Assembly (NCBI GenBank): GCA_964247055.1
Contig: OZ176054.1
Location: 5,394,001-5,458,000 of the forward strand
DNA from: Paragordius varius
Taxonomy: Eukaryota; Animalia; Nematomorpha
Direction of reading: 5' to 3'
DNA: 64,000 nt
In this document: piece after piece, positions 712 to 34,286 of the stretch
How positions within the stretch are numbered: position 1 is the stretch's first letter
How the letters are laid out: every line of letters begins with the position of its first letter
Notes under the pieces: model-generated
Databases searched by the model: none
Told to the model about the DNA's origin: nothing
What the model saw: only the letters and a program-made list of their open reading frames with translations
Translations under genes and position numbers: made by a program

Positions 712-3700
712 TCTATATATTTATAAAAATGGAAAATGCTGGCTTTGTGATCTGGTACAGGAAAACCGGTAGACCCAATCAAATCCAAATATCGAAAAAA
801 TATAATCATTAATAAATGTCCCGACAATAGCTTCGCCCTTTTTTTGAAATATGCCCCCAGTTCGGGCCCACCCCGTATGAAAAACGGGTTTTTTTTGAAA
901 ACAGAAGTCCACAAAATCGTGTTTTTGAGACAATTTTCCGGAGAACGTGTTGGACCATTCAATTTCAAATATGATTTTTGTTTACTTATTTTCGATTGCG
1001 CCGAACATAGTCGAGTCACTTTTTTGATTTAGGCCCTCTTTTTACCCGCTCCCCCCGTAAAATGCCATTTTTTTCAAAAAACAAAGTCCACAAAAATAAT
1101 TTTTTAAATCGATTTTTCGTCCTAGGTATGAGACCTTAAAAATTCAATAAAGATTCCACGTATTCCCTGTTAAAAGGCAAAAATTTTAGTCCACCGTTTA
1201 TTTGATGATAGCTGCTGGGTAAGGAGCTACCCGCTAAAAACTGATTTTTCATATAACTTTGTGATCTGTTTCCGGAAAACCGGTGAACCCATTCAAATCC
1301 AAACATCGAAAAAATATAATCATTAATGAATGCCCCGACAATAGCTTCGCCCTTTTTTGGAATTAGGTCCCCAGTTTGGGCCCACCCCGTGTGAAAAATG
1401 GGTTAAGTCAATTTTTTGGAGAACGTGTTGGACCATTCAATTTCAAATATGATTTTTGTTTACTTATTTTCGATTGCGCCGAACATAGTCGAGTCACTTT
1501 TTTGATTTAGGCCCTCTTTTTACCCGCTACCCCCGTAAAATGCCATTTTTTTCAAAAAACAAAGTCCACAAAAATAATTTTTTAAATCGATTTTTCGTCC
1601 TAGGTATGAGACCTTAAAAATTCAATAAAGATTCCACGTATTCCCTGTTAAAAGGCAAAAATTTTAGTCCACCGTTTATTTGATGATAGCTGCTGGGTAA
1701 GGAGCTACCCGCTAAAAACTGATTTTTCATATAACTTTGTGATCTGTTTCCGGAAAACCGGTGAACCCATTCAAATCCAAACATCGAAAAAATATAATCA
1801 TTAATGAATGCCCCGACAATAGCTTCGCCCTTTTTTGGAATTAGGTCCCCAGTTTGGGCCCACCCCGTGTGAAAAATGGGTTAAGTCAATTTTTTGGAGA
1901 ACGTGTTGGACCATTCAATTTCAAATATGATTTTTGTTTACTTATTTTCGATTGCGCCGAACATAGTCGAGTCACTTTTTTGATTTAGGCCCTCTTTTTA
2001 CCCGCTACCCCCGTAAAATGCCATTTTTTTCAAAAAAAAACAAAGTCCACAAAAATATTTTTTTGATTGTATTTTTTTGTCCACGGTATGAGACTGTAAA
2101 AATTCGAGAAAGATTTTTCGTATTGCCTGTTAAAAGGCAAAAATTTTAGTCAAGCGTTTCTTTGATGATAGCTGCTGAGTAAGGAGTATCTATCATATGT
2201 ATAGCATGTTAAAAGATATATGGATATTAATACATTATTTATCCTCATCTATCTATATATTTATAAAAATGGAAAATGCTGGCTTTGTGATCTGGTACAG
2301 GAAAACCGGTAGACCCAATCAAATCCAAATATCGATAAAATATAATCATTAATAAATGTCCCGACAATAGCTTCGCCCTTTTTTTGAAATAGGCCCCCAG
2401 TTCGGGCCCACCCCGTATGAAAAACGGGTTTTTTTTGAAAACAGAAGTCCACAAAATCGTGTTTTTGAGACAATTTTCCGGAGAACGTGTTGGACCATTC
2501 AATTTCAAATATGATTTTTGTTTACTTATTTTCGATTGCGCCGAACATAGTCGAGCCACTTTTTTGATTTAGGCCCTCTTTTTACCCGCTCCCCCCGTAA
2601 AATGCCATTTTTTTCAAAAAACAAAGTCCACAAAAATAATTTTCTAAATCGATTTTTCGCCCTAGGTACGAGACCGTAAAAATTCAATAAAGATTCCACG
2701 TATTCCCTGTTAAAAGGCAAAAATTTTAGTCCACCGTTTATTTGATGATAGCTGCTGGGTAAGGAGCTACCCGCTAAAAACTGATTTTTCATATAACTTT
2801 GTGAACTGTTTCCGGAAAATCGGTGATCCCAATCAAATCCAAATATCGAAAAAATATAATCATTAATGAATGCCCCGACAATAGCTTCGCCCTTTTTTGG
2901 AATTAGGTCCCCAGTTCGGGCCCACCCCGTGTGAAAAATGGGTTAAGTCAATTTTTTGGAGAACGTGTTGGACCATTCAATTTCAAATATGATTTTTGTT
3001 TACTTATTTTTGATCGCGCTGAACATAGTCGAGTCACTTTTTTGATTTAGGCCCTCTTTTTACCCGCTACCCCCGTAAAATGCCATTTTTTTCAAAAAAA
3101 AACAAAGTCCACAAAAATATTTTTTTGATTGTATTTTTTTGTCCACGGTATGAGACTGTAAAAATTCGAGAAAGATTTTTCGTAATGCCTGTTAAAAGGC
3201 AAAAATTTTAGTCAAGCGTTTCTTTGATGATAGCTGCTGAGTAAGGAGTATCTATCATATGTATAGCATGTTAAAAGATATATGGATATTAATACATTAT
3301 TTATCCTCATCTATATATTTATAAAAATGGAAAATGCTGGCTTTGTGATCTGGTACAGGAAAACCGGTAGACCCAATCAAATCCAAATATCGAAAAAATA
3401 TAATCATTAATAAATGTCCCGACAATAGCTTCGCCCTTTTTTTGAAATATGCCCCCAGTTCGGGCCCACCCCGTATGAAAAACGGGTTTTTTTTGAAAAC
3501 AGAAGTCCACAAAATCGTGTTTTTGAGACAATTTTCCGGAGAACGTGTTGGACCATTCAATTTCAAATATAATTTTTGTTTACTTATTTTCGATTGCGCC
3601 GAACATAGTCGAGCCACTTTTTTGATTTAGGCCCTCTTTTTACCCGCTCCCCCCGTAAAATGCCATTTTTTTCAAAAAACAAAGTCCACAAAAATAATTT

Positions 3701-6700
3701 TCTAAATCGATTTTTCGCCCTAGGTACGAGACCGTAAAAATTCAATAAAGATTCCACGTATTCCCTGTTAAAAGGCAAAAATTTTAGTCCACCGTTTATT
3801 TGATGATAGCTGCTGGGTAAGGAGCTACCCGCTAAAAACTGATTTTTCATATAACTTTGTGAACTGTTTCCGGAAAATCGGTGATCCCAATCAAATCCAA
3901 ATATCGAAAAAATATAATCATTAATGAATGCCCCGACAATAGCTTCGCCCTTTTTTGGAATTAGGTCCCCAGTTCGGGCCCACCCCGTGTGAAAAATGGG
4001 TTAAGTCAATTTTTTGGAGAACGTGTTGGACCATTCAATTTCAAATATGATTTTTGTTTACTTATTTTCGATTGCGCCGAACATAGTCGAGTCACTTTTT
4101 TGATTTAGGCCCTCTTTTTACCCGCTACCCCCGTAAAATGCCATTTTTTTCAAAAAAAAACAAAGTCCACAAAAATATTTTTTTGATTGTATTTTTTGTC
4201 CACGGTATGAGACTGTAAAAATTCGAGAAAGATTTTTCGTATTGCCTGTTAAAAGGCAAAAATTTTAGTCAAGCGTTTCTTTGATGATAGCTGCTGAGTA
4301 AAGAGTATCTATCATATGTATAGCATGTTAAAAGATATATGGATATTAATACATTATTTATCCTCATCTATATATTTATAAAAATGGAAAATGCTGGCTT
4401 TGTGATCTGGTACAGGAAAACCGGTAGACCCAATCAAATCCAAATATCGATAAAATATAATCATTAATAAATGTCCCGACAATAGCTTCGCCCTTTTTTT
4501 GAAATAGGCCCCCAGTTCGGGCCCACCCCGTATGAAAAACGGGTTTTTTTTGAAAACAGAAGTCCACAAAATCGTGTTTTTGAGACAATTTTCCGGAGAA
4601 CGTGTTGGACCATTCAATTTCAAATATGATTTTTGTTTACTTATTTTCGATTGCGCCGAACATAGTCGAGCCACTTTTTTGATTTAGGCCCTCTTTTTAC
4701 CCGCTCCCCCCGTAAAATGCCATTTTTTTCAAAAAACAAAGTCCACAAAAATAATTTTTTAAATCGATTTTTCGCCCTAGGTACGAGACCGTAAAAATTC
4801 AATAAAGATTCCACGTATTCCCTGTTAAAAGGCAAAAATTTTAGTCCACCGTTTATTTGATGATAGCTGCTGGGTAAGGAGCTACCCGCTAAAAACTGAT
4901 TTTTCATATAACTTTGTGAACTGTTTCCGGAAAATCGGTGATCCCAATCAAATCCAAATATCGAAAAAATATAATCATTAATGAATGCCCCGACAATAGC
5001 TTCGCCCTTTTTTGGAATTAGGTCCCCAGTTTGGGCCCACCCCGTGTGAAAAATGGGTTAAGTCAATTTTTTGGAGAACGTGTTGGACCATTCAATTTCA
5101 AATATGAATTTTGTTTACTTATTTTTGATCGCGCTGAACATAGTCGAGTCACATTTTTGATTTAGGCCCTCTTTTTACCCGCTACCCCCGTAAAATGCCA
5201 TTTTTTTCAAAAAAAAACAAAGTCCACAAAAATATTTTTTTGATTGTATTTTTTTGTCCACGGTATGAGACTGTAAAAATTCGAGAAAGATTTTTCGTAA
5301 TGCCTGTTAAAAGGCAAAAATTTTAGTCAAGCGTTTCTTTGATGATAGCTGCTGAGTAAGGAGTATCTATCATATGTATAGCATGTTAAAAGATATATGG
5401 ATATTAATACATTATTTATCCTCATCTATATATTTATAAAAATGGAAAATGCTGGCTTTGTGATCTGGTACAGGAAAACCGGTAGACCCAATCAAATCCA
5501 AATATCGAAAAAATATAATCATTAATAAATGTCCCGACAATAGCTTCGCCCTTTTTTTGAAATATGCCCCCAGTTCGGGCCCACCCCGTATGAAAAACGG
5601 GTTTTTTTTGAAAACAGAAGTCCACAAAATCGTGTTTTTGAGACAATTTTCCGGAGAACGTGTTGGACCATTCAATTTCAAATATGATTTTTGTTTACTT
5701 ATTTTGGATTGCGCCGAACATAGTCGAGTCACTTTTTTGATTTAGGCCCTCTTTTTACCCGCTCCCCCCGTAAAATGCCATTTTTTTCAAAAAACAAAGT
5801 CCACAAAAATAATTTTTTAAATCGATTTTTCGTCCTAGGTATGAGACCGTAAAAATTCAATAAAGATTCCACGTAAAAGGCAAAAATTTTAGTCCACCGT
5901 TTATTTGATGATAGCTGCTGGGTAAGGAGCTACCCGCTAAAAACTGATTTTTCATATAACTTTGTGATCTGTTTCCGGAAAACCGGTGAACCCATTCAAA
6001 TCCAAACATCGAAAAAATATAATCATTAATGAATGCCCCGACAATAGCTTCGCCCTTTTTTGGAATTAGGTCCCCAGTTTGGGCCCACCCCGTGTGAAAA
6101 ATGGGTTAAGTCAATTTTTTGGAGAACGTGTTGGACCATTCAATTTCAAATATGATTTTTGTTTACTTATTTTCGATTGCGCCGAACATAGTCGAGTCAC
6201 TTTTTTGATTTAGGCCCTCTTTTTACCCGCTACCCCCGTAAAATGCCATTTTTTTTCAAAAAAAAACAAAGTCCACAAAAATATTTTTTTGATTGTATTT
6301 TTTTGTCCACGGTATGAGACTGTAAAAATTCGAGAAAGATTTTTCGTATTGCCTGTTAAAAGGCAAAAATTTTAGTCAAGCGTTTCTTTGATGATAGCTG
6401 CTGAGTAAGGAGTATCTATCATATGTATAGCATGTTAAAAGATATATGGATATTAATACATTATTTATCCTCATCTATATATTTATAAAAATGGAAAATG
6501 CTGGCTTTGTGATCTGGTACAGGAAAACCGGTAGACCCAATCAAATCCAAATATCGAAAAAATATAATCATTAATAAATGTCCCGACAATAGCTTCGCCC
6601 TTTTTTTGAAATATGCCCCCAGTTCGGGCCCACCCCGTATGAAAAACGGGTTTTTTTTGAAAACAGAAGTCCACAAAATCGTGTTTTTGAGACAATTTTC

Positions 6701-9700
6701 CGGAGAACGTGTTGGACCATTCAATTTCAAATATGATTTTTGTTTACTTATTTTGGATTGCGCCGAACATAGTCGAGTCACTTTTTTGATTTAGGCCCTC
6801 TTTTTACCCGCTCCCCCCGTAAAATGCCATTTTTTTCAAAAAACAAAGTCCACAAAAATAATTTTTTAAATCGATTTTTCGTCCTAGGTATGAGACCTTA
6901 AAAATTCAATAAAGATTCCACGTAAAAGGCAAAAATTTTAGTCCACCGTTTATTTGATGATAGCTGCTGGGTAAGGAGCTACCCGCTAAAAACTGATTTT
7001 TCATATAACTTTGTGATCTGTTTCCGGAAAACCGGTGAACCCATTCAAATCCAAACATCGAAAAAATATAATCATTAATGAATGCCCCGACAATAGCTTC
7101 GCCCTTTTTTGGAATTAGGTCCCCAGTTTGGGCCCACCCCGTGTGAAAAATGGGTTAAGTCAATTTTTTGGAGAACGTGTTGGACCATTCAATTTCAAAT
7201 ATGATTTTTGTTTACTTATTTTCGATTGCGCCGAACATAGTCGAGTCACTTTTTTGATTTAGGCCCTCTTTTTACCCGCTACCCCCGTAAAATGCCATTT
7301 TTTTTCAAAAAAAAACAAAGTCCACAAAAATATTTTTTTGATTGTATTTTTTTGTCCACGGTATGAGACTGTAAAAATTCGAGAAAGATTTTTCGTATTG
7401 CCTGTTAAAAGGCAAAAATTTTAGTCAAGCGTTTCTTTGATGATAGCTGCTGAGTAAGGAGTATCTATCATATGTATAGCATGTTAAAAGATATATGGAT
7501 ATTAATACATTATTTATCCTCATCTATATATTTATAAAAATGGAAAATGCTGGCTTTGTGATCTGGTACAGGAAAACCGGTAGACCCAATCAAATCCAAA
7601 TATCGAAAAAATATAATCATTAATAAATGTCCCGACAATAGCTTCGCCCTTTTTTTGAAATATGCCCCCAGTTCGGGCCCACCCCGTATGAAAAACGGGT
7701 TTTTTTTGAAAACAGAAGTCCACAAAATCGTGTTTTTGAGACAATTTTCCGGAGAACGTGTTGGACCATTCAATTTCAAATATGATTTTTGTTTACTTAT
7801 TTTGGATTGCGCCGAACATAGTCGAGTCACTTTTTTGATTTAGGCCCTCTTTTTACCCGCTCCCCCCGTAAAATGCCATTTTTTTCAAAAAACAAAGTCC
7901 ACAAAAATAATTTTTTAAATCGATTTTTCGTCCTAGGTATGAGACCTTAAAAATTCAATAAAGATTCCACGTAAAAGGCAAAAATTTTAGTCCACCGTTT
8001 ATTTGATGATAGCTGCTGGGTAAGGAGCTACCCGCTAAAAACTGATTTTTCATATAACTTTGTGATCTGTTTCCGGAAAACCGGTGAACCCATTCAAATC
8101 CAAACATCGAAAAAATATAATCATTAATGAATGCCCCGACAATAGCTTCGCCCTTTTTTGGAATTAGGTCCCCAGTTTGGGCCCACCCCGTGTGAAAAAT
8201 GGGTTAAGTCAATTTTTTGGAGAACGTGTTGGACCATTCAATTTCAAATATGATTTTTGTTTACTTATTTTCGATTGCGCCGAACATAGTCGAGTCACTT
8301 TTTTGATTTAGGCCCTCTTTTTACCCGCTACCCCCGTAAAATGCCATTTTTTTTCAAAAAAAAACAAAGTCCACAAAAATATTTTTTTGATTGTATTTTT
8401 TTGTCCACGGTATGAGACTGTAAAAATTCGAGAAAGATTTTTCGTATTGCCTGTTAAAAGGCAAAAATTTTAGTCAAGCGTTTCTTTGATGATAGCTGCT
8501 GAGTAAGGAGTATCTATCATATGTATAGCATGTTAAAAGATATATGGATATTAATACATTATTTATCCTCATCTATATATTTATAAAAATGGAAAATGCT
8601 GGCTTTGTGATCTGGTACAGGAAAACCGGTAGACCCAATCAAATCCAAATATCGAAAAAATATAATCATTAATAAATGTCCCGACAATAGCTTCGCCCTT
8701 TTTTTGAAATATGCCCCCAGTTCGGGCCCACCCCGTATGAAAAACGGGTTTTTTTTGAAAACAGAAGTCCACAAAATCGTGTTTTTGAGACAATTTTCCG
8801 GAGAACGTGTTGGACCATTCAATTTCAAATATGATTTTTGTTTACTTATTTTGGATTGCGCCGAACATAGTCGAGTCACTTTTTTGATTTAGGCCCTCTT
8901 TTTACCCGCTCCCCCCGTAAAATGCCATTTTTTTCAAAAAACAAAGTCCACAAAAATAATTTTTTAAATCGATTTTTCGTCCTAGGTATGAGACCTTAAA
9001 AATTCAATAAAGATTCCACGTAAAAGGCAAAAATTTTAGTCCACCGTTTATTTGATGATAGCTGCTGGGTAAGGAGCTACCCGCTAAAAACTGATTTTTC
9101 ATATAACTTTGTGATCTGTTTCCGGAAAACCGGTGAACCCATTCAAATCCAAACATCGAAAAAATATAATCATTAATGAATGCCCCGACAATAGCTTCGC
9201 CCTTTTTTGGAATTAGGTCCCCAGTTTGGGCCCACCCCGTGTGAAAAATGGGTTAAGTCAATTTTTTGGAGAACGTGTTGGACCATTCAATTTCAAATAT
9301 GATTTTTGTTTACTTATTTTCGATTGCGCCGAACATAGTCGAGTCACTTTTTTGATTTAGGCCCTCTTTTTACCCGCTACCCCCGTAAAATGCCATTTTT
9401 TTTCAAAAAAAAACAAAGTCCACAAAAATATTTTTTTGATTGTATTTTTTTGTCCACGGTATGAGACTGTAAAAATTCGAGAAAGATTTTTCGTATTGCC
9501 TGTTAAAAGGCAAAAATTTTAGTCAAGCGTTTCTTTGATGATAGCTGCTGAGTAAGGAGTATCTATCATATGTATAGCATGTTAAAAGATATATGGATAT
9601 TAATACATTATTTATCCTCATCTATATATTTATAAAAATGGAAAATGCTGGCTTTGTGATCTGGTACAGGAAAACCGGTAGACCCAATCAAATCCAAATA

Positions 9701-12700
9701 TCGAAAAAATATAATCATTAATAAATGTCCCGACAATAGCTTCGCCCTTTTTTTGAAATATGCCCCCAGTTCGGGCCCACCCCGTATGAAAAACGGGTTT
9801 TTTTTGAAAACAGAAGTCCACATCGTGTTTTTGAGACAATTTTCCGGAGAACGTGTTGGACCATTCAATTTCAAATATGATTTTTGTTTACTTATTTTCG
9901 ATTGCGCCGAACATAGTCGAGTCACTTTTTTGATTTAGGCCCTCTTTTTACCCGCTCCCCCCGTAAAATGCCATTTTTTTCAAAAAACAAAGTCCACAAA
10001 AATAATTTTTTAAATCGATTTTTCGTCCTAGGTATGAGACCTTAAAAATTCAATAAAGATTCCACGTATTCCCTGTTAAAAGGCAAAAATTTTAGTCCAC
10101 CGTTTATTTGATGATAGCTGCTGGGTAAGGAGCTACCCGCTAAAAACTGATTTTTCATATAACTTTGTGATCTGTTTCCGGAAAACCGGTGAACCCATTC
10201 AAATCCAAACATCGAAAAAATATAATCATTAATGAATGCCCCGACAATAGCTTCGCCCTTTTTTGGAATTAGGTCCCCAGTTTGGGCCCACCCCGTGTGA
10301 AAAATGGGTTAAGTCAATTTTTTGGAGAACGTGTTGGACCATTCAATTTCAAATATGATTTTTGTTTACTTATTTTCGATTGCGCCGAACATAGTCGAGT
10401 CACTTTTTTGATTTAGGCCCTCTTTTTACCCGCTACCCCCGTAAAATGCCATTTTTTTCAAAAAAAAACAAAGTCCACAAAAATATTTTTTTGATTGTAT
10501 TTTTTTGTCCACGGTATGAGACTGTAAAAATTCGAGAAAGATTTTTCGTATTGCCTGTTAAAAGGCAAAAATTTTAGTCAAGCGTTTCTTTGATGATAGC
10601 TGCTGAGTAAGGAGTATCTATCATATGTATAGCATGTTAAAAGTTATATGGATATTAATACATTATTTATCCTCATCTATATATTTATAAAAATGGAAAA
10701 TGCTGGCTTTGTGATCTGGTACAGGAAAACCGGTAGACCCAATCAAATCCAAATATCGAAAAAATATAATCATTAATAAATGTCCCGACAATAGCTTCGC
10801 CCTTTTTTTGAAATATGCCCCCAGTTCGGGCCCACCCCGTATGAAAAACGGGTTTTTTTTGAAAACAGAAGTCCACATCGTGTTTTTGAGACAATTTTCC
10901 GGAGAACGTGTTGGACCATTCAATTTCAAATATGATTTTTGTTTACTTATTTTCGATTGCGCCGAACATAGTCGAGTCACTTTTTTGATTTAGGCCCTCT
11001 TTTTACCCGCTCCCCCCGTAAAATGCCATTTTTTTCAAAAAACAAAGTCCACAAAAATAATTTTTTAAATCGATTTTTCGTCCTAGGTATGAGACCTTAA
11101 AAATTCAATAAAGATTCCACGTATTCCCTGTTAAAAGGCAAAAATTTTAGTCCACCGTTTATTTGATGATAGCTGCTGGGTAAGGAGCTACCCGCTAAAA
11201 ACTGATTTTTCATATAACTTTGTGATCTGTTTCCGGAAAACCGGTGAACCCATTCAAATCCAAACATCGAAAAAATATAATCATTAATGAATGCCCCGAC
11301 AATAGCTTCGCCCTTTTTTGGAATTAGGTCCCCAGTTTGGGCCCACCCCGTGTGAAAAATGGGTTAAGTCAATTTTTTGGAGAACGTGTTGGACCATTCA
11401 ATTTCAAATATGATTTTTGTTTACTTATTTTCGATTGCGCCGAACATAGTCGAGTCACTTTTTTGATTTAGGCCCTCTTTTTACCCGCTACCCCCGTAAA
11501 ATGCCATTTTTTTTCAAAAAAAAACAAAGTCCACAAAAATATTTTTTTGATTGTATTTTTTTGTCCACGGTATGAGACTGTAAAAATTCGAGAAAGATTT
11601 TTCGTATTGCCTGTTAAAAGGCAAAAATTTTAGTCAAGCGTTTCTTTGATGATAGCTGCTGAGTAAGGAGTATCTATCATATGTATAGCATGTTAAAAGA
11701 TATATGGATATTAATACATTATTTATCCTCATCTATATATTTATAAAAATGGAAAATGCTGGCTTTGTGATCTGGTACAGGAAAACCGGTAGACCCAATC
11801 AAATCCAAATATCGAAAAAATATAATCATTAATAAATGTCCCGACAATAGCTTCGCCCTTTTTTTGAAATATGCCCCCAGTTCGGGCCCACCCCGTATGA
11901 AAAACGGGTTTTTTTTGAAAACAGAAGTCCACAAAATCGTGTTTTTGAGACAATTTTCCGGAGAACGTGTTGGACCATTCAATTTCAAATATGATTTTTG
12001 TTTACTTATTTTGGATTGCGCCGAACATAGTCGAGTCACTTTTTTGATTTAGGCCCTCTTTTTACCCGCTCCCCCCGTAAAATGCCATTTTTTTCAAAAA
12101 ACAAAGTCCACAAAAATAATTTTTTAAATCGATTTTTCGTCCTAGGTATGAGACCTTAAAAATTCAATAAAGATTCCACGTAAAAGGCAAAAATTTTAGT
12201 CCACCGTTTATTTGATGATAGCTGCTGGGTAAGGAGCTACCCGCTAAAAACTGATTTTTCATATAACTTTGTGATCTGTTTCCGGAAAACCGGTGAACCC
12301 ATTCAAATCCAAACATCGAAAAAATATAATCATTAATGAATGCCCCGACAATAGCTTCGCCCTTTTTTGGAATTAGGTCCCCAGTTTGGGCCCACCCCGT
12401 GTGAAAAATGGGTTAAGTCAATTTTTTGGAGAACGTGTTGGACCATTCAATTTCAAATATGATTTTTGTTTACTTATTTTCGATTGCGCCGAACATAGTC
12501 GAGTCACTTTTTTGATTTAGGCCCTCTTTTTACCCGCTACCCCCGTAAAATGCCATTTTTTTTCAAAAAAAAACAAAGTCCACAAAAATATTTTTTTGAT
12601 TGTATTTTTTTGTCCACGGTATGAGACTGTAAAAATTCGAGAAAGATTTTTCGTATTGCCTGTTAAAAGGCAAAAATTTTAGTCAAGCGTTTCTTTGATG

Positions 12701-15700
12701 ATAGCTGCTGAGTAAGGAGTATCTATCATATGTATAGCATGTTAAAAGATATATGGATATTAATACATTATTTATCCTCATCTATATATTTATAAAAATG
12801 GAAAATGCTGGCTTTGTGATCTGGTACAGGAAAACCGGTAGACCCAATCAAATCCAAATATCGAAAAAATATAATCATTAATAAATGTCCCGACAATAGC
12901 TTCGCCCTTTTTTTGAAATATGCCCCCAGTTCGGGCCCACCCCGTATGAAAAACGGGTTTTTTTTGAAAACAGAAGTCCACAAAATCGTGTTTTTGAGAC
13001 AATTTTCCGGAGAACGTGTTGGACCATTCAATTTCAAATATGATTTTTGTTTACTTATTTTGGATTGCGCCGAACATAGTCGAGTCACTTTTTTGATTTA
13101 GGCCCTCTTTTTACCCGCTCCCCCCGTAAAATGCCATTTTTTTCAAAAAACAAAGTCCACAAAAATAATTTTTTAAATCGATTTTTCGTCCTAGGTATGA
13201 GACCTTAAAAATTCAATAAAGATTCCACGTAAAAGGCAAAAATTTTAGTCCACCGTTTATTTGATGATAGCTGCTGGGTAAGGAGCTACCCGCTAAAAAC
13301 TGATTTTTCATATAACTTTGTGATCTGTTTCCGGAAAACCGGTGAACCCATTCAAATCCAAACATCGAAAAAATATAATCATTAATGAATGCCCCGACAA
13401 TAGCTTCGCCCTTTTTTGGAATTAGGTCCCCAGTTTGGGCCCACCCCGTGTGAAAAATGGGTTAAGTCAATTTTTTGGAGAACGTGTTGGACCATTCAAT
13501 TTCAAATATGATTTTTGTTTACTTATTTTCGATTGCGCCGAACATAGTCGAGTCACTTTTTTGATTTAGGCCCTCTTTTTACCCGCTACCCCCGTAAAAT
13601 GCCATTTTTTTTCAAAAAAAAACAAAGTCCACAAAAATATTTTTTTGATTGTATTTTTTTGTCCACGGTATGAGACTGTAAAAATTCGAGAAAGATTTTT
13701 CGTATTGCCTGTTAAAAGGCAAAAATTTTAGTCAAGCGTTTCTTTGATGATAGCTGCTGAGTAAGGAGTATCTATCATATGTATAGCATGTTAAAAGATA
13801 TATGGATATTAATACATTATTTATCCTCATCTATATATTTATAAAAATGGAAAATGCTGGCTTTGTGATCTGGTACAGGAAAACCGGTAGACCCAATCAA
13901 ATCCAAATATCGAAAAAATATAATCATTAATAAATGTCCCGACAATAGCTTCGCCCTTTTTTTGAAATATGCCCCCAGTTCGGGCCCACCCCGTATGAAA
14001 AACGGGTTTTTTTTGAAAACAGAAGTCCACATCGTGTTTTTGAGACAATTTTCCGGAGAACGTGTTGGACCATTCAATTTCAAATATGATTTTTGTTTAC
14101 TTATTTTCGATTGCGCCGAACATAGTCGAGTCACTTTTTTGATTTAGGCCCTCTTTTTACCCGCTCCCCCCGTAAAATGCCATTTTTTTCAAAAAACAAA
14201 GTCCACAAAAATAATTTTTTAAATCGATTTTTCGTCCTAGGTATGAGACCTTAAAAATTCAATAAAGATTCCACGTATTCCCTGTTAAAAGGCAAAAATT
14301 TTAGTCCACCGTTTATTTGATGATAGCTGCTGGGTAAGGAGCTACCCGCTAAAAACTGATTTTTCATATAACTTTGTGATCTGTTTCCGGAAAACCGGTG
14401 AACCCATTCAAATCCAAACATCGAAAAAATATAATCATTAATGAATGCCCCGACAATAGCTTCGCCCTTTTTTGGAATTAGGTCCCCAGTTTGGGCCCAC
14501 CCCGTGTGAAAAATGGGTTAAGTCAATTTTTTGGAGAACGTGTTGGACCATTCAATTTCAAATATGATTTTTGTTTACTTATTTTCGATTGCGCCGAACA
14601 TAGTCGAGTCACTTTTTTGATTTAGGCCCTCTTTTTACCCGCTACCCCCGTAAAATGCCATTTTTTTCAAAAAAAAACAAAGTCCACAAAAATATTTTTT
14701 TGATTGTATTTTTTTGTCCACGGTATGAGACTGTAAAAATTCGAGAAAGATTTTTCGTATTGCCTGTTAAAAGGCAAAAATTTTAGTCAAGCGTTTCTTT
14801 GATGATAGCTGCTGAGTAAGGAGTATCTATCATATGTATAGCATGTTAAAAGTTATATGGATATTAATACATTATTTATCCTCATCTATATATTTATAAA
14901 AATGGAAAATGCTGGCTTTGTGATCTGGTACAGGAAAACCGGTAGACCCAATCAAATCCAAATATCGAAAAAATATAATCATTAATAAATGTCCCGACAA
15001 TAGCTTCGCCCTTTTTTTGAAATATGCCCCCAGTTCGGGCCCACCCCGTATGAAAAACGGGTTTTTTTTGAAAACAGAAGTCCACATCGTGTTTTTGAGA
15101 CAATTTTCCGGAGAACGTGTTGGACCATTCAATTTCAAATATGATTTTTGTTTACTTATTTTCGATTGCGCCGAACATAGTCGAGTCACTTTTTTGATTT
15201 AGGCCCTCTTTTTACCCGCTCCCCCCGTAAAATGCCATTTTTTTCAAAAAACAAAGTCCACAAAAATAATTTTTTAAATCGATTTTTCGTCCTAGGTATG
15301 AGACCTTAAAAATTCAATAAAGATTCCACGTATTCCCTGTTAAAAGGCAAAAATTTTAGTCCACCGTTTATTTGATGATAGCTGCTGGGTAAGGAGCTAC
15401 CCGCTAAAAACTGATTTTTCATATAACTTTGTGATCTGTTTCCGGAAAACCGGTGAACCCATTCAAATCCAAACATCGAAAAAATATAATCATTAATGAA
15501 TGCCCCGACAATAGCTTCGCCCTTTTTTGGAATTAGGTCCCCAGTTTGGGCCCACCCCGTGTGAAAAATGGGTTAAGTCAATTTTTTGGAGACGTGTTGG
15601 ACCATTCAATTTCAAATATGATTTTTGTTTACTTATTTTCGATTGCGCCGAACATAGTCGAGTCACTTTTTTGATTTAGGCCCTCTTTTTACCCGCTACC

Positions 15701-18700
15701 CCCGTAAAATGCCATTTTTTTCAAAAAAAAACAAAGTCCACAAAAATATTTTTTTGATTGTATTTTTTTGTCCACGGTATGAGACTGTAAAAATTCGAGA
15801 AAGATTTTTCGTATTGCCTGTTAAAAGGCAAAAATTTTAGTCAAGCGTTTCTTTGATGATAGCTGCTGAGTAAGGAGTATCTATCATATGTATAGCATGT
15901 TAAAAGATATATGGATATTAATACATTATTTATCCTCATCTATATATTTATAAAAATGGAAAATGCTGGCTTTGTGATCTGGTACAGGAAAACCGGTAGA
16001 CCCAATCAAATCCAAATATCGAAAAAATATAATCATTAATAAATGTCCCGACAATAGCTTCGCCCTTTTTTTGAAATAGGCCCCCAGTTCGGGCCCACCC
16101 CGTATGAAAAACGGGTTTTTTTTGAAAACAGAAGTCCACAAAATCGTGTTTTTGAGACAATTTTCCGGAGAACGTGTTGGACCATTCAATTTCAAATATG
16201 ATTTTTGTTTACTTATTTTCGATTGCGCCGAACATAGTCGAGTCACTTTTTTGATTTAGGCCCTCTTTTTACCCGCTCCCCCCGTAAAATGCCATTTTTT
16301 TCAAAAAACAAAGTCCACAAAAATAATTTTTTAAATCGATTTTTCGTCCTAGGTATGAGACTGTAAAAATTCGAGAAAGATTTTTCGTATTGCCTGTTAA
16401 AAGGCAAAAATTTTAGTCAAGCGTTTCTTTGATGATAGCTGCTGAGTAAGGAGTATCTATCATATGTATAGCATGTTAAAAGATATATGGATATTAATAC
16501 ATTATTTATCCTCATCTATATATTTATAAAAATGGAAAATGCTGGCTTTGTGATCTGGTACAGGAAAACCGGTAGACCCAATCAAATCCAAATATCGAAA
16601 AAATATAATCATTAATAAATGTCCCGACAATAGCTTCGCCCTTTTTTTGAAATATGCCCCCAGTTCGGGCCCACCCCGTATGAAAAACGGGTTTTTTTTG
16701 AAAACAGAAGTCCACAAAATCGTGTTTTTGAGACAATTTTCCGGAGAACGTGTTGGACCATTCAATTTCAAATATGATTTTTGTTTACTTATTTTCGATT
16801 GCGCCGAACATAGTCGAGTCACTTTTTTGATTTAGGCCCTCTTTTTACCCGCTCCCCCCGTAAAATGCCATTTTTTTCAAAAAACAAAGTCCACAAAAAT
16901 AATTTTTTAAATCGATTTTTCGTCCTAGGTATGAGACTGTAAAAATTCGAGAAAGATTTTTCGTATTGCCTGTTAAAAGGCAAAAATTTTAGTCAAGCGT
17001 TTCTTTGATGATAGCTGCTGAGTAAGGAGTATCTATCATATGTATAGCATGTTAAAAGATATATGGATATTAATACATTATTTATCCTCATCTATATATT
17101 TATAAAAATGGAAAATGCTGGCTTTGTGATCTGGTACAGGAAAACCAGTAGACCCAATCAAATCCAAATATCGAAAAAATATAATCATTAATAAATGTCC
17201 CGACAATAGCTTCGCCCTTTTTTTGAAATAGGCCCCCAGTTCGGGCCCACCCCGTATGAAAAACGGGTTTTTTTTGAAAACAGAAGTCCACAAAATCGTG
17301 TTTTTGAGACAATTTTCCGGAGAACGTGTTGGACCATTCAATTTCAAATATGATTTTTGTTTACTTATTTTCGATTGCGCCGAACATAGTCGAGTCACTT
17401 TTTTGATTTAGGCCCTCTTTTTACCCGCTCCCCCCGTAAAATGCCATTTTTTTCAAAAAACAAAGTCCACAAAAATAATTTTTTAAATCGATTTTTCGTC
17501 CTAGGTATGAGACTGTAAAAATTCGAGAAAGATTTTTCGTATTGCCTGTTAAAAGGCAAAAATTTTAGTCAAGCGTTTCTTTGATGATAGCTGCTGAGTA
17601 AGGAGTATCTATCATATGTATAGCATGTTAAAAGATATATGGATATTAATACATTATTTATCCTCATCTATATATTTATAAAAATGGAAAATGCTGGCTT
17701 TGTGATCTGGTACAGGAAAACCGGTAGACCCAATCAAATCCAAATATCGAAAAAATATAATCATTAATAAATGTCCCGACAATAGCTTCGCCCTTTTTTT
17801 GAAATATGCCCCCAGTTCGGGCCCACCCCGTATGAAAAACGGGTTTTTTTTGAAAACAGAAGTCCACATCGTGTTTTTGAGACAATTTTCCGGAGAACGT
17901 GTTGGACCATTCAATTTCAAATATGATTTTTGTTTACTTATTTTCGATTGCGCCGAACATAGTCGAGTCACTTTTTTGATTTAGGCCCTCTTTTTACCCG
18001 CTCCCCCCGTAAAATGCCATTTTTTTCAAAAAACAAAGTCCACAAAAATAATTTTTTAAATCGATTTTTCGTCCTAGGTATGAGACCTTAAAAATTCAAT
18101 AAAGATTCCACGTATTCCCTGTTAAAAGGCAAAAATTTTAGTCCACCGTTTATTTGATGATAGCTGCTGGGTAAGGAGCTACCCGCTAAAAACTGATTTT
18201 TCATATAACTTTGTGATCTGTTTCCGGAAAACCGGTGAACCCATTCAAATCCAAACATCGAAAAAATATAATCATTAATGAATGCCCCGACAATAGCTTC
18301 GCCCTTTTTTGGAATTAGGTCCCCAGTTTGGGCCCACCCCGTGTGAAAAATGGGTTAAGTCAATTTTTTGGAGAACGTGTTGGACCATTCAATTTCAAAT
18401 ATGATTTTTGTTTACTTATTTTCGATTGCGCCGAACATAGTCGAGTCACTTTTTTGATTTAGGCCCTCTTTTTACCCGCTACCCCCGTAAAATGCCATTT
18501 TTTTCAAAAAAAAACAAAGTCCACAAAAATATTTTTTTGATTGTATTTTTTTGTCCACGGTATGAGACTGTAAAAATTCGAGAAAGATTTTTCGTATTGC
18601 CTGTTAAAAGGCAAAAATTTTAGTCAAGCGTTTCTTTGATGATAGCTGCTGAGTAAGGAGTATCTATCATATGTATAGCATGTTAAAAGTTATATGGATA

Positions 18701-21700
18701 TTAATACATTATTTATCCTCATCTATATATTTATAAAAATGGAAAATGCTGGCTTTGTGATCTGGTACAGGAAAACCGGTAGACCCAATCAAATCCAAAT
18801 ATCGAAAAAATATAATCATTAATAAATGTCCCGACAATAGCTTCGCCCTTTTTTTGAAATATGCCCCCAGTTCGGGCCCACCCCGTATGAAAAACGGGTT
18901 TTTTTTGAAAACAGAAGTCCACATCGTGTTTTTGAGACAATTTTCCGGAGAACGTGTTGGACCATTCAATTTCAAATATGATTTTTGTTTACTTATTTTC
19001 GATTGCGCCGAACATAGTCGAGTCACTTTTTTGATTTAGGCCCTCTTTTTACCCGCTCCCCCCGTAAAATGCCATTTTTTTCAAAAAACAAAGTCCACAA
19101 AAATAATTTTTTAAATCGATTTTTCGTCCTAGGTATGAGACCTTAAAAATTCAATAAAGATTCCACGTATTCCCTGTTAAAAGGCAAAAATTTTAGTCCA
19201 CCGTTTATTTGATGATAGCTGCTGGGTAAGGAGCTACCCGCTAAAAACTGATTTTTCATATAACTTTGTGATCTGTTTCCGGAAAACCGGTGAACCCATT
19301 CAAATCCAAACATCGAAAAAATATAATCATTAATGAATGCCCCGACAATAGCTTCGCCCTTTTTTGGAATTAGGTCCCCAGTTTGGGCCCACCCCGTGTG
19401 AAAAATGGGTTAAGTCAATTTTTTGGAGAACGTGTTGGACCATTCAATTTCAAATATGATTTTTGTTTACTTATTTTCGATTGCGCCGAACATAGTCGAG
19501 TCACTTTTTTGATTTAGGCCCTCTTTTTACCCGCTACCCCCGTAAAATGCCATTTTTTTCAAAAAAAAACAAAGTCCACAAAAATATTTTTTTGATTGTA
19601 TTTTTTTGTCCACGGTATGAGACTGTAAAAATTCGAGAAAGATTTTTCGTATTGCCTGTTAAAAGGCAAAAATTTTAGTCAAGCGTTTCTTTGATGATAG
19701 CTGCTGAGTAAGGAGTATCTATCATATGTATAGCATGTTAAAAGATATATGGATATTAATACATTATTTATCCTCATCTATATATTTATAAAAATGGAAA
19801 ATGCTGGCTTTGTGATCTGGTACAGGAAAACCGGTAGACCCAATCAAATCCAAATATCGAAAAAATATAATCATTAATAAATGTCCCGACAATAGCTTCG
19901 CCCTTTTTTTGAAATAGGCCCCCAGTTCGGGCCCACCCCGTATGAAAAACGGGTTTTTTTTGAAAACAGAAGTCCACAAAATCGTGTTTTTGAGACAATT
20001 TTCCGGAGAACGTGTTGGACCATTCAATTTCAAATATGATTTTTGTTTACTTATTTTCGATTGCGCCGAACATAGTCGAGTCACTTTTTTGATTTAGGCC
20101 CTCTTTTTACCCGCTCCCCCCGTAAAATGCCATTTTTTTCAAAAAACAAAGTCCACAAAAATAATTTTTTAAATCGATTTTTCGTCCTAGGTATGAGACT
20201 GTAAAAATTCGAGAAAGATTTTTCGTATTGCCTGTTAAAAGGCAAAAATTTTAGTCAAGCGTTTCTTTGATGATAGCTGCTGAGTAAGGAGTATCTATCA
20301 TATGTATAGCATGTTAAAAGATATATGGATATTAATACATTATTTATCCTCATCTATATATTTATAAAAATGGAAAATGCTGGCTTTGTGATCTGGTACA
20401 GGAAAACCGGTAGACCCAATCAAATCCAAATATCGAAAAAATATAATCATTAATAAATGTCCCGACAATAGCTTCGCCCTTTTTTTGAAATATGCCCCCA
20501 GTTCGGGCCCACCCCGTATGAAAAACGGGTTTTTTTTGAAAACAGAAGTCCACAAAATCGTGTTTTTGAGACAATTTTCCGGAGAACGTGTTGGACCATT
20601 CAATTTCAAATATGATTTTTGTTTACTTATTTTCGATTGCGCCGAACATAGTCGAGTCACTTTTTTGATTTAGGCCCTCTTTTTACCCGCTCCCCCCGTA
20701 AAATGCCATTTTTTTCAAAAAACAAAGTCCACAAAAATAATTTTTTAAATCGATTTTTCGTCCTAGGTATGAGACTGTAAAAATTCGAGAAAGATTTTTC
20801 GTATTGCCTGTTAAAAGGCAAAAATTTTAGTCAAGCGTTTCTTTGATGATAGCTGCTGAGTAAGGAGTATCTATCATATGTATAGCATGTTAAAAGATAT
20901 ATGGATATTAATACATTATTTATCCTCATCTATATATTTATAAAAATGGAAAATGCTGGCTTTGTGATCTGGTACAGGAAAACCGGTAGACCCAATCAAA
21001 TCCAAATATCGAAAAAATATAATCATTAATAAATGTCCCGACAATAGCTTCGCCCTTTTTTTGAAATATGCCCCCAGTTCGGGCCCACCCCGTATGAAAA
21101 ACGGGTTTTTTTTGAAAACAGAAGTCCACAAAATCGTGTTTTTGAGACAATTTTCCGGAGAACGTGTTGGACCATTCAATTTCAAATATGATTTTTGTTT
21201 ACTTATTTTCGATTGCGCCGAACATAGTCGAGTCACTTTTTTGATTTAGGCCCTCTTTTTACCCGCTCCCCCCGTAAAATGCCATTTTTTTCAAAAAACA
21301 AAGTCCACAAAAATAATTTTTTAAATCGATTTTTCGTCCTAGGTATGAGACTGTAAAAATTCGAGAAAGATTTTTCGTATTGCCTGTTAAAAGGCAAAAA
21401 TTTTAGTCAAGCGTTTCTTTGATGATAGCTGCTGAGTAAGGAGTATCTATCATATGTATAGCATGTTAAAAGATATATGGATATTAATACATTATTTATC
21501 CTCATCTATATATTTATAAAAATGGAAAATGCTGGCTTTGTGATCTGGTACAGGAAAACCGGTAGACCCAATCAAATCCAAATATCGAAAAAATATAATC
21601 ATTAATAAATGTCCCGACAATAGCTTCGCCCTTTTTTTGAAATAGGCCCCCAGTTCGGGCCCACCCCGTATGAAAAACGGGTTTTTTTTGAAAACAGAAG

Positions 21701-23137
21701 TCCACAAAATCGTGTTTTTGAGACAATTTTCCGGAGAACGTGTTGGACCATTCAATTTCAAATATGATTTTTGTTTACTTATTTTCGATTGCGCCGAACA
21801 TAGTCGAGTCACTTTTTTGATTTAGGCCCTCTTTTTACCCGCTCCCCCCGTAAAATGCCATTTTTTTCAAAAAACAAAGTCCACAAAAATAATTTTTTAA
21901 ATCGATTTTTCGTCCTAGGTATGAGACTGTAAAAATTCGAGAAAGATTTTTCGTATTGCCTGTTAAAAGGCAAAAATTTTAGTCAAGCGTTTCTTTGATG
22001 ATAGCTGCTGAGTAAGGAGTATCTATCATATGTATAGCATGTTAAAAGATATATGGATATTAATACATTATTTATCCTCATCTATATATTTATAAAAATG
22101 GAAAATGCTGGCTTTGTGATCTGGTACAGGAAAACCGGTAGACCCAATCAAATCCAAATATCGAAAAAATATAATCATTAATAAATGTCCCGACAATAGC
22201 TTCGCCCTTTTTTTGAAATATGCCCCCAGTTCGGGCCCACCCCGTATGAAAAACGGGTTTTTTTTGAAAACAGAAGTCCACAAAATCGTGTTTTTGAGAC
22301 AATTTTCCGGAGAACGTGTTGGACCATTCAATTTCAAATATGATTTTTGTTTACTTATTTTCGATTGCGCCGAACATAGTCGAGTCACTTTTTTGATTTA
22401 GGCCCTCTTTTTACCCGCTCCCCCCGTAAAATGCCATTTTTTTCAAAAAACAAAGTCCACAAAAATAATTTTTTAAATCGATTTTTCGTCCTAGGTATGA
22501 GACCTTAAAAATTCAATAAAGATTCCACGTATTCCCTGTTAAAAGGCAAAAATTTTAGTCCACCGTTTATTTGATGATAGCTGCTGGGTAAGGAGCTACC
22601 CGCTAAAAACTGATTTTTCATATAACTTTGTGATCTGTTTCCGGAAAACCGGTGAACCCATTCAAATCCAAACATCGAAAAAATATAATCATTAATGAAT
22701 GCCCCGACAATAGCTTCGCCCTTTTTTGGAATTAGGTCCCCAGTTTGGGCCCACCTCGTGTGAAAAATGGGTTAAGTCAATTTTTTGGAGAACGTGTTGG
22801 ACCATTCAATTTCAAATATGATTTTTGTTTACTTATTTTCGATTGCGCCGAACATAGTCGAGCCACCTTTTTGATTTAGGCCCTCTTTTTACCCGCTCCC
22901 CCCGTAAAATGCCATTTTTTTCAAAAAAAACAAAGTCCACAAAAATATTTTTTTGATTGTATTTTTTTGCCCACGGTATGAGACTGTAAAAATTCGAGAA
23001 GGTTTTTTCGTATTGCCTGTTAAAAGGCAAAAATTTTGGTCAAGCGTTTCTTTGATGATAGATGCTGAGTAAGGAGTATCTATCATATGTATAGCATGTT
23101 AATAGATATATGGATATTAAAACATTATTTATGGTAA
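712..23137. repeat. Tandem satellite-like array: 1 trimer (~1.54 kb), 16 dimers (~1049-1058 bp), 7 monomers (576 bp)
   Basis: Near-identical units. Periods were read from the repeated ORF coordinates (e.g. 6461/7510/8559/9608; 15926/16502/17078/17654; 19764/20340/20916/21492/22068). Each dimer has two diverged subunits (A, B) sharing motifs such as CCGACAATAGCTTCGCCC and GGACCATTCAATTTCAAATATG. Confidence 0.97.
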
Positions 23138-23228
23138 TCTATATATTTATAAAAATGGAAAATGCTGGCTTTGTGATCTACAGGAAAAACGGTACACCCA
23201 TTCAAATCCAAACTTCGAACCCCCCCCA

Positions 23229-23279
23229 GAAGTCCGAAGGACTTCCTCGGGCTGCGTAGCAGCACGAGATTCACGCTAG
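23229..23279 (+). terminator. Helitron 3' terminator: two tandem GC-rich hairpins plus CTAG
   Basis: GAAGTCC-GAA-GGACTTC (23229-23245, perfect 7-bp stem) and CTCG.GCTGC-GTA-GCAGC.CGAG (23246-23268, 9/10-bp stem), then ATTCACG-CTAG. Confidence 0.8.
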
Positions 23280-28607: not shown

Positions 28608-28629
28608 CTGATAAATTGATTTGAATTTG

Positions 28630-32652: not shown

Positions 32653-34286
32653 CTAGCTGCCCTGTCACGCTTCGCTGTGATGTAGTTTCACCGATAATTA
32701 TTTTTAATAATTTGCAATAAATAGAGGTAATGGAGATAAAAATAATAAAAAACATTTAATAAAAAGAATGCTTCAATTATTCTTTTACGGGTTTGCATAG
32801 GCTCAAATATTGTTTACTCGAAATTGATCATATTGTCCCTTAAAGTTAATCAAATATATTTAGATTTATTTTTTTTCGTTTTACAAAATCATGGTTAAAT
32901 ATTTTGAAATTGTGTTCACACAGCTGGGATCAAGGGATATAAAAAGTAAATCATCTGTGATCCCCTTTTAAAGGAAAAAAATGATATTATACAAATTACC
33001 CAGAAATGCGTTTAACTGAACTCGTATAGCCTCTTATGTTTTTTGAAAATTAGCTTCAAAACCACCTCATTTTTGTATGGCGTCTCAGTTTTAAACGGGA
33101 AGACCCCTAACCATAGACCTCTACGAAAAAAGCGCTGAGTTAAATTTTTTGCTCTATAGGATAGGGGATCTTTGATTCCATCTTCTCATGGGCCATTCGA
33201 AATACCTCAACACTAAATAATCGCTATACGATGGCGTATTTTTAGGGGCAGAGAGGCCCCAAATTAACGGCTAATTAAAAAAGCCCGACCTTTATTTCTA
33301 TCTAGTTATGGGTAATATTTCAAGCTTTTAATGGACTCATATGACTTCATAAATTTTCTGTATATTAGCTCCAAAACAATGCAATTTCTATATAGTGCAG
33401 TTTTTGGCGGGTAGCTCCCTACAGGGGCAGGTATAAAAAAGCATTAGACAAATTTTTGCCTTTATATGGGGCATATCTGAAATTATCATGGATTTCATAT
33501 GTTCCTATTAGTCTCTTAGGTTCTCTGAAAAATGGCTCCAAATGCATGCTCTATCGATATCATGACACAATTTACGCGGATAGTACCCTAACCATAGGCA
33601 AAACAAAAAACGCTCGATTAAAATTTTTACCTTAATTCGGATAATACCTAGAATCATGATATTGATTTCATATGCTCTCGTGGGTTTTTCGAAAAATTGT
33701 CAAAACCAAAAAGTCATTCTATGGTGGCGAATTTCAGGGCAAGGGCCTATTTAAGGGGTAATTTATTAAACCGCTCTACTTAATTTTTTGCCTTTTTACG
33801 GGCAATATATCAAGCAGCTATTGAACTCATATTGCCTGATAGGTTTTCTGGAATTTAGCCACAAAGGCATGCTATTTCAATATGATGGGCCAGTTTTTAG
33901 CGGGTATCTCCTTACCCAGCAGCCAATATAAAAAAACGCACCACTAATATTTTTGCCTTTTAACAGGGAATACATGGAATCCTTATTGAATTTTTACGGT
34001 CTCATACCCTGGACCAAAAATAGATTCAAAAAATTATTTTTATGGACTTTTTAAAAATGGCATTTTACGGGGGGACCGGGTAAAAAGAAGGCCTAAATTA
34101 AAAAAGCGAGCCGATTATGTTCGGCGCAATCGAAAAAAAGTAAAAAAATTCACATTTGAAATCGAATGATCCAATCTTAAAATTTCAAAAAACCATTTAT
34201 ACACGGGGTGGGCCCGAACTGGGGGCCCAATTCAAAAAAGGGCGAAGCTATTGTCGGTGCATCCATGATTTATTAAGAGTAGTAGA
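32653..34286 (-). mobile_element. Non-autonomous Helitron (~1.63 kb) with both termini; its 5' ~400 bp is homologous to the big array monomer
   Basis: Minus strand: A|TCTACTACTCTTAATAAATC... at 34286, and ...TCACAGCGAAGCGTGACAGGGCAG-CTAG|T at 32653. 33895-34258 shares CCGACAATAGCTTCGCCC, CCCCCAGTTCGGGCCCACCCCGT, TTTCGATTGCGCCGAACATA, TATTCCCTGTTAAAAGGCAAAAAT and GCTGCTGGGTAAGGAG with the array. Confidence 0.75.

Follow-up and report, generated by a model that had tools for sequence, protein, structure and literature searches.

Hybrid monomers with and without the 5' terminus in a many-headed Helitron array

Does a satellite monomer need a transposon origin in order to multiply? The question is raised by the window, the whole stretch of 64,000 nucleotides analysed here, in which a hybrid monomer carrying the TC terminus of a Helitron is found seven times and a hybrid lacking it once. 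The first-pass annotation had proposed from these counts that amplification may favour units keeping the Rep nicking site. Our analysis indicates that the array is very probably the body of one non-autonomous Helitron, grown and reshuffled in place by misaligned exchange between its tandem copies in several registers, and that amplification does not require the 5' TC terminus.

Anatomy of the element

Positions 712 to 23279 of the window, on the plus strand, form a single non-coding Helitron. Its body consists of a tandem array of 22.6 kb, and the element has 25 heads for a single 3' end. The head, a 31-nt 5' terminal motif starting with TC, is first found at 712-742 (plus strand), where it is preceded by the nucleotide A and opens with TCTATATATT, as expected for a canonical 5' TC end; each of the 25 copies is a potential nick site for Rep. 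The 25-nt core of the motif has 25 matches in the window, with TC starts at 712, 2252, 3310 and so on up to 22081 and 23138, and the head-to-head spacings are 1540 bp for the first, 1049-1058 bp (n = 16) and 576 bp (n = 7). Most units of the array are A+B dimers of about 1049-1058 bp. The nucleotide A precedes the heads at array starts and is near-universal before heads that open an element, while internal heads are preceded by the tail of B (…CCTCA).

At the other end of the body, a terminal partial repeat (23138-23220, plus strand), made of a head and about 50 nt of monomer front, gives head-to-head homology that spans the whole body; the fetched loci contain 26 such termini, in which the tail preceding the last head is a …GGTAA variant. 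The 3' terminus itself (23221-23279, plus strand) is predicted to fold as DNA into two adjacent hairpins, followed by CTAG (-15.3 kcal/mol, z = -4.26; none of 200 shuffles folded equally well), and the hairpins stop 11 nt short of the terminus, as in a canonical Helitron. The element ends with ...CACGCTAG at 23279 and is followed by T. In the fetched DNA, T lies directly 3' of 37 of 37 family 3' ends, next to unrelated flanks, as expected of insertion between A and T, and CTAG (CTRR) closes all 37 of them and 749 genome-wide. By its TC start, CTAG end, 3' hairpins and A/T insertion, the element of the window is a canonical (Helitron1-type), non-autonomous Helitron. With 25 heads and one 3' end, it is also a many-headed array, that is, one in which two or more 5' termini stand in tandem before a single 3' terminus.

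None of the 16 Helitron_like_N matches in the assembly is an intact Rep: all are partial or interrupted by stops, with open stretches of at most 299 aa. The family head was found near Rep-like matches at none of the six fetched loci. A family 3' end lying by a Rep remnant (L046) was considered as a cognate autonomous element and rejected, the two being on opposite strands.

Hybrid monomers and nested duplications

The array was painted with 12-mers diagnostic for A or B, and positions within units are given as alignment columns. Painting revealed three headed 576-bp hybrid units at 15939-17666 and four more with the same breakpoint at 19777-22080 (both plus strand). All seven are A-type to column 415 and B-type from column 417, with the switch inside GGTATGAGAC, and the junction of CCTAGGTATGAGAC with TGTAAAAATTCGAG has 7 exact matches in the window. 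Pairwise, the seven units differ at 0-2 positions. Spacings and painting agree exactly with the seven A-front/B-back hybrids carrying the TC terminus that the first-pass annotation had described. The flanking unit at 22081 has exactly the same A sequence as their A-part, and the upstream dimers exactly the same B sequence as their B-part. At the breakpoint, identity extends over only about 10 bp, although an identical tract of 110 bp was available; therefore, template switching or microhomology fits this breakpoint better than classical crossing-over.

The extra 478-bp unit without terminus, previously placed at about 1263-1740, was found at 1258-1735 (plus strand), inside the first array repeat, and the head is indeed absent. 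It combines a B front (columns 32-336) and an A back (columns 356-552), being B-type through GCTACCCCCG (1526-1535) and A-type from about 1549, with AAAGTCCACAAAAATAAT at 1561. Its front is that of the adjacent B and its back that of the adjacent A, and the segments 940-1559 and 1418-2037 are equal save one mismatch. The unit lies at the 5' edge, where the array is less homogenised. As copies of the hybrids are near-perfect, chance can be set aside as an issue. Inheritance by transposition might explain the A-BA-B trimer at the 5' side, an extra unit being present at the same place in loci L038, L039 and L041. This was rejected for the window and for L038, because the duplicate halves share locus-private variants and the breakpoints differ; in particular, the extra head-less unit of L038 has the variants of its own locus and a different breakpoint.

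The earlier proposal that unequal exchange made both hybrids stands as far as a local, misaligned exchange between A and B is concerned, with parts that match the neighbouring units, but their description as near-reciprocal has to be abandoned. The breakpoints are unlike (columns 336-356 in the 478-bp unit and 415/417 in the 576-bp units), hence one and the same event did not produce the two hybrids as reciprocal partners. That 576 + 478 = 1054 is no evidence of reciprocity but simple arithmetic: a hybrid is as long as the offset (A-to-B or B-to-A) at the point where it switches, and two opposite offsets at any one site sum to one dimer. True reciprocal partners of the two hybrids would measure about 482 bp and about 584 bp. 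Moreover, the reciprocal products of a single exchange land on different chromatids.

The seven copies do not indicate a preference either, as the two blocks amount to one segmental duplication plus about three 576-bp steps. This tandem duplication, with a period of 3837/3838 bp (two dimers and three 576-bp units), extends over 13667-21644 (plus strand); 13667-17806 equals 17504-21644 with three differences over 4.1 kb, and the SNP pattern at unit position 141 (G,T,G versus G,T,T,G) supports that it joins both blocks. The seven 576-bp copies reduce to about four events, and the 3.8-kb duplication among them copied ordinary dimers too. A second tandem segmental duplication, with a period of 4209 bp (four dimers), covers 6923-15592 (plus strand), where 6923-11383 and 11132-15592 share 4461 identical bases with zero mismatches. 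The dimer distance matrix, in which this duplication is visible, also contains 1049-bp dimers that are identical over whole runs. Core dimers differ from each other at 0-6 positions, and from the first three dimers and the last one at 15-20.

In the classical satellite model, higher-order-repeat satellites evolve by unequal crossing-over. As expected of such a satellite shaped by unequal exchange, our array has a dimeric repeat, out-of-register hybrid monomers that match their neighbours, multi-unit duplications, a homogenised core and divergent edges; unlike these satellites, it has a transposon terminus within its repeat unit and remains bounded as a whole by the mobile element. The coexistence in one array of nested duplications of different periods and near-perfect identity supports exchange in place, the identity of hybrid parts with neighbouring units supports that it was local, and edges more divergent than the core are expected under unequal exchange.

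The same layout could have been built prior to insertion, if a circular intermediate devoid of the 3' end had been amplified in rolling-circle fashion and the product integrated as a block. This would account for the many 5' ends with one 3' end, for the exact bounds (A before the first head, T after CTAG) and for the genome-wide counts of heads (1871) versus 3' ends (749), and such an origin is the one modelled by Xiong et al. 2016, according to PMC12628747. However, it predicts a strictly periodic array, whereas we observed a non-periodic nest of 478-, 576-, 1049-1058-, 3837- and 4209-bp duplications with an edge-to-core gradient of divergence. Moreover, the A-part of the hybrid matches the next downstream unit and its B-part the next upstream one, the signature of exchange between neighbours in place. 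Non-periodicity, gradient and neighbour-built hybrids, although they test the mechanism indirectly, make a rolling-circle generation improbable.

We also asked whether the copy numbers of seven and one could be unreal, the assembler having collapsed or over-expanded repeat copies. Multi-kilobase tracts of 100% identity are the hardest to assemble and the window was read from one assembly, but ordered unit-specific variants (position 141 G/T, position 57 G/A, lengths 1049/1055/1056/1054) nest consistently, and other contigs carry the same types of unit at many loci. An artefact of this kind is therefore hardly credible.

We infer both the exchange mechanism and its neutrality from these patterns. 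Misaligned exchange in place could proceed by unequal crossing-over between sister chromatids or homologues, or by template switching during replication. The body of the family is most aptly summarised as a head, n internal monomers of about 478 bp (front and A back), a last monomer with the B back and a long tail, a second partial head and the 3' end. An exchange from head to head would duplicate the whole body and lead to many-headed arrays, while an exchange between an A half and a B half would move the register by half a dimer, giving either a headed unit of about 576 bp (n = 0) or an extra head-less unit of about 478 bp (n + 1). Both kinds of hybrid presumably arise repeatedly across the genome, and the later multiplication of a new unit may depend mostly on drift and on its position in the array, the interior being homogenised and the edges not.

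Head-less and headed runs elsewhere in the genome

The idea that the terminus drives expansion can be stated as a mechanism in which Rep/Hel nicks at the 5' TC and re-replicates the monomers that keep the head, so that a transposon origin selects among satellite variants. The seven headed copies versus one head-less copy in the window agree with it, and so does the headed hybrid present as 3-5 copies at 3 of the 4 other loci where it was readable. In addition, on single-stranded DNA the Helraiser transposase makes its cut precisely at the junction of flank and 5'-TC, and transposition requires the left end (PMC4778049); the published rolling-circle model over-amplifies 5' ends (Xiong et al. 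2016, as reported in PMC12628747).

The genome-wide picture is different. At C5:10.48-10.53 Mb, 96 consecutive head-less units of 474-480 bp extend over 46.8 kb without one head, and this run begins mid-monomer, also with no head. At least 29 consecutive head-less units are found at C1:14.906-14.926 Mb (about 40 units in the 20 kb examined) and at least 10 at C1:2.47 Mb. Headed runs of about 576 bp reached 3-5 copies among the places scored; longer ones may exist beyond these places, under a ceiling of 211 internal B tails outside the window. The census covered the first 100 places per pattern, with 3-32 candidates scored per DNA search, and a search with two head-less units, in which 3 of 1431 candidates were scored, missed the large arrays. 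Five places (C3:10.03-10.05 Mb, C2:4.09 Mb, C2:10.41 Mb, C9:1.96 Mb and C4:4.73 Mb) were characterised by motif spacings only, and a putative 2014-bp repeat at C2:10.408-10.414 Mb is likewise read from spacings alone.

Long terminus-less runs elsewhere, which the first-pass annotation had named as the finding that would refute a preference for the Rep site, thus exist at three loci. The strict claim that only start-keeping variants can multiply fails. The longest runs seen, by far, are of the head-less monomer, and the other evidence also weighs against an amplification biased by the TC: the seven copies represent about four events, one of them copying ordinary dimers; the head-less unit of the window sits in the first repeat, at the less homogenised 5' edge; all 16 Rep-like matches are broken, yet the duplications are recent enough to keep 4.4 kb of identity; and the sample of headed runs was drawn by a query built of two headed units. 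We therefore regard selection by the transposon origin as very unlikely.

In dimer arrays, a small and biased sample, headed hybrids were more often expanded (7, 5, 3 and 1 copies) than head-less ones (mostly 1). There is a slim chance that, in head-bearing dimer arrays, TC-keeping units of about 576 bp expand more readily, with occasional Rep-dependent re-replication from internal heads adding to unequal exchange, while long head-less arrays would follow a separate, slower and purely recombinational route.

Headed hybrids at other loci have different breakpoints (columns 445/451 and 416/428 in L037, columns 457/473 in L051 and L014), which argues for independent origins. The genome contains units of every kind from n = 0 to n = 3 internal monomers. 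Two shortcuts for typing units across the genome were discarded. The surplus of BA over AB units, calculated from 817 A tails versus 234 internal B tails genome-wide, is confounded by the terminal …GGTAA tail variant, which was not counted. The B-type front failed as a marker of head-less units in many solo elements, where it comes straight after a head; the type of front is therefore no guide to head status.

Relation to known systems and significance

Many-headed Helitron satellites are already known as a kind, and the array of the window is a further member of it. Truncated Helitrons arranged in tandem, with several 5' ends to one 3' end, were described in 27 plant genomes (Xiong, Dooner & Du 2016, Plant J, as presented in PMC12628747). 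Our array resembles them, as far as that account describes them, in its many 5' termini and one 3' terminus, in lying exactly within the Helitron ends and in copy numbers from a few to about 100. It differs in its internal pattern, which points to stepwise exchange in place and not to one rolling-circle burst, in its animal-like host with a 110-Mb genome, and in the coexistence of head-less and headed arrays of one monomer.

Central repeats of Helitrons or Helentrons that expand into satellites are also known from DINE-TR1 in Drosophila virilis and Cg170/HindIII in Crassostrea gigas (PMC12628747, PMC8268682). From what these sources describe, the common features are internal tandem repeats of a non-autonomous rolling-circle element reaching tens of kilobases and the occurrence of element-bound, one-side-bounded and free arrays, the run at C5:10.48-10.53 Mb, which starts mid-monomer, being our counterpart. 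By the same sources, DINE-TR1 and Cg170 are of Helentron/Helitron2 type with monomers of about 150-170 bp, whereas here the element is a canonical TC...CTAG one with a monomer of about 478 bp and the 5' terminus inside the repeat unit. The ends are those of Helraiser, the reconstructed bat Helitron (Helibat; PMC4778049), with 5'-TC and CTAG-3', a hairpin placed about 11 nt before the 3' end, and A and T flanking the insertion; in contrast to its single 19-bp palindrome, there are two adjacent 3' hairpins here, and an intact cognate transposase was not found among the 16 Rep-like matches.

If it were true that a nick site biases which satellite variants expand, this would provide a testable link between transposase activity and satellite evolution. 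The genome-wide check indicates that such a link is unneeded, as the same monomer amplifies furthest without the terminus. The history of the array is fully readable as nested unequal exchanges, which makes it a very clean, dated-by-identity case of a Helitron body turning into a higher-order satellite. With units of n = 0, 1, 2 and 3 and both kinds of hybrid within one genome, the family may also serve as teaching or benchmarking material for models of satellite evolution.

An array with many 5' ends and one 3' end

The window (G000:C5:5394001-5458000, from an assembly of 110.5 Mb in 44 contigs) contains a tandem array that, according to k-mer offsets, spans ~700 to ~23,200, with main periods of 1049-1058, 576 and 478 bp; Tandem Repeats Finder, with periods limited to 500, detects the 478-bp part only. 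The array opens at 712 (TCTATATATTTATAAAAATGG...), immediately after a host A, and closes at 23279 with two adjacent hairpins (-15.3 kcal/mol, z = -4.26) and ...CACGCTAG; the next base is a host T. In the DNA fetched, CTAG then T was found at 37/37 family 3' ends, with unrelated flanks, and an A precedes the heads (31-nt 5' termini beginning TC) that open an element. The head occurs 25 times within the window's Helitron, and motif counts over the whole assembly gave 1871 heads versus 749 3' ends. The TC/CTAG ends, the A/T flanks and the recurring head mark the family as canonical, non-autonomous Helitrons. An extra TCTA precedes the first internal head at 2248-2255 (…CCTCATCTATCTATATATT…), a 4-bp duplication of the terminus seen at no other junction in the window.

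As Helraiser cleavage of single-stranded DNA falls between the flank and 5'-TC, with the left end required for its transposition (PMC4778049), each head is in principle a plausible nick site. We found no cognate intact Rep/Hel among the 16 Helitron_like_N matches in the assembly, all of which (16/16) were partial or stop-interrupted, with surrounding open stretches of at most 299 aa; Rep-like remnants of this kind (L044-L049) lie at G000:C8:2.82 Mb, C1:10.59 Mb, C6:4.23 Mb, and C2:1.43 and 11.90 Mb. An active Helitron transposase may be absent from the genome, despite the ~1900 heads of this family. Located 5 kb downstream of the Helitron, an uninterrupted open frame of 968 aa (28621-31527, plus strand) with a strong SAC3/GANP domain (E = 2e-73) probably represents a host gene for nuclear mRNA export.

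Origin of the hybrid units in the window

The window dimer has two halves: A (~542-546 bp), which joins the head to a monomer with a 36-bp insert, and B (~513 bp), whose monomer has another back half and ends in a 60-nt tail adjoining the next head. A and B are alignable end to end, with an identical tract of ~110 bp (columns 225-335 of their alignment) outside which diagnostic differences and indels are scattered. The indels make the A-to-B offset vary by segment (514, 478 or 482 bp, complemented by B-to-A offsets of 541-544, 577-580 or 573-576 bp), and the length of an out-of-register exchange hybrid is exactly the offset at its breakpoint.

Painting the array with 12-mers specific to A or B revealed 16 ordinary dimers, seven 576-bp units (15939-17666 and 19777-22080; A-type to column 415, B-type from 417) and one 478-bp unit (1258-1735; B-type to column 336, A-type from 356). 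Both hybrid types therefore exist, and a string search matched their junctions where the first-pass annotation had placed them. The near-reciprocal origin that it had proposed does not hold, since the breakpoints differ and the two hybrids are not the products of one exchange. The 576-bp unit would have had a partner of ~482 bp and the 478-bp unit one of ~584 bp, the latter because the first repeat measures 1540 = 1062 + 478. Reciprocal products also go to different chromatids. The sum 576+478 falls near one dimer because the offsets add up arithmetically.

The 478-bp unit, located in the very first repeat of the array, is a clean local duplication: 940-1559 equals 1418-2037, the only mismatch being the diagnostic A/C difference at column 336. 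Among the seven 576-bp units, 0-2 positions differ; their A-part, where it carries T at 141, is the same base for base as in the downstream 22081 unit and the 712 unit, and their B-part matches that of the upstream dimers without a difference, the signature of neighbour exchange. Moreover, 13667-17806 matches 17504-21644 at an offset of 3837/3838 with three differences, so that the duplicated segment was dimer, dimer, 576, 576, 576, and the two 576-bp blocks are not independent. At position 141 the three-unit block reads G,T,G and the four-unit block G,T,T,G, which implies one more 576-bp step afterwards. Another duplicated segment, four dimers long (4209 bp), shows no mismatch across 4461 bp. 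Core dimers differ from each other at 0-6 positions, whereas the first three and the last differ from them at 15-20; the interior of the array is thus being homogenised and its edges are not.

The count of seven copies against one is correct, but it does not establish a preference for headed units: given the segmental duplication and the few 576-bp steps, it reduces to ~four events against none, at unequal array positions. Under neutral drift, a new unit would reach k copies before loss with a chance of ~1/k.

Repeats borne by Helitrons or Helentrons have become satellites in Drosophila and oysters (PMC12628747, PMC8268682). Xiong et al. 2016 reported arrays in which several 5' ends share a single 3' end from 27 plant genomes, with a rolling-circle model over-amplifying 5' ends, as related in the review PMC12628747. 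The window array is a new family among these known systems. In contrast to such a rolling-circle burst, the internal pattern of the window array favours stepwise exchange in place.

Head-less and headed runs elsewhere in the assembly

That only units keeping the terminus expand is contradicted by long head-less runs of ~478 bp, named beforehand as the evidence that would count against it, at three loci. At C5:10.478-10.538 Mb, a run of 96 head-less units (474-480 bp, all B-type in front and A-type at the back) extends over 46.8 kb with no head; it opens mid-monomer and on its 3' side turns into headed dimers. At C1:14.906-14.926 Mb, ~40 units in 20 kb include 29 consecutive head-less spacings of 468-479 bp (at least 29 units), and the array continues past both ends of the stretch fetched. 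At C1:2.466-2.475 Mb, at least 10 head-less units come after one head. Several other dimer arrays carry single extra head-less units, and the one at locus L038 has locus-private variants and a breakpoint other than the window's. The 3'-side headed dimers of the first run (L031, G000:C5:10478001-10488000, minus strand) measure ~1000 bp, with a headed half of 465-467 bp front to front and without the 36-bp insert; this dimer type differs from that of the window.

Headed runs of ~576 bp were found with five units at C3:6.366 Mb and three at C1:6.208 Mb, with a single unit at C8:3.89 Mb and further single units on C9, C2 and C3 from alignments or motif spacings only. Breakpoints differ between loci (415/417 in the window, 445/451 and 416/428 at L037, 457/473 at L051 and L014), and these units therefore arose independently. 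No headed run exceeded five units among the places scored outside the window, where 211 internal B tails set an upper bound on headed units still hidden. This census of run lengths covers the pattern matches listed and a few scored DNA-search candidates in arrays as assembled, and its headed runs were found with a headed query, which biases the sample towards them. A modest head-linked expansion bias within dimer arrays is possible.

Body plan of the family

The family is better described as a body made of a head, n internal monomers of ~478 bp, a last monomer (B back plus tail), a second partial head and the 3' end. Here A corresponds to the first monomer, BA to any internal one, B to the last, and AB to a body with n = 0. 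The junction 28-mer with A on its left and B on its right occurs 25 times genome-wide (18 outside the window), often ~290 nt from a 3' end, i.e., in the last unit. Tandem units were found for every n from 0 to 3. At G000:C2:10408598-10414640 (minus strand), B tails recur every 2014 bp and enclose pairs of 478-spaced monomers; motif spacings and alignments suggest a higher-order repeat (A, then two head-less monomers, then B) present at least three times.

We also observed other arrangements of family members. Near position 1500 of L013 (G000:C1:9226177-9230379, minus strand), a family 3' end (…CACGCTAG) abuts a head (TCTATATATTTA…), representing either two Helitrons joined tail-to-head without an intervening host base or the insertion of one precisely at the other's end. 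Two heads in opposite orientation lie ~20 bp apart at G000:C1:6418141-6418212, so two members inserted head-to-head. In the window, a lone degenerate fragment of the ~478-bp monomer (33891-34266, minus strand, opposite to the array; 80-88% identity) has neither a head nor a 3' end close to it.

If the 5' head exchanged with the internal partial head, the whole body would be duplicated. By this route, many-headed arrays would start exactly at the terminus, and a transposase would not be needed.
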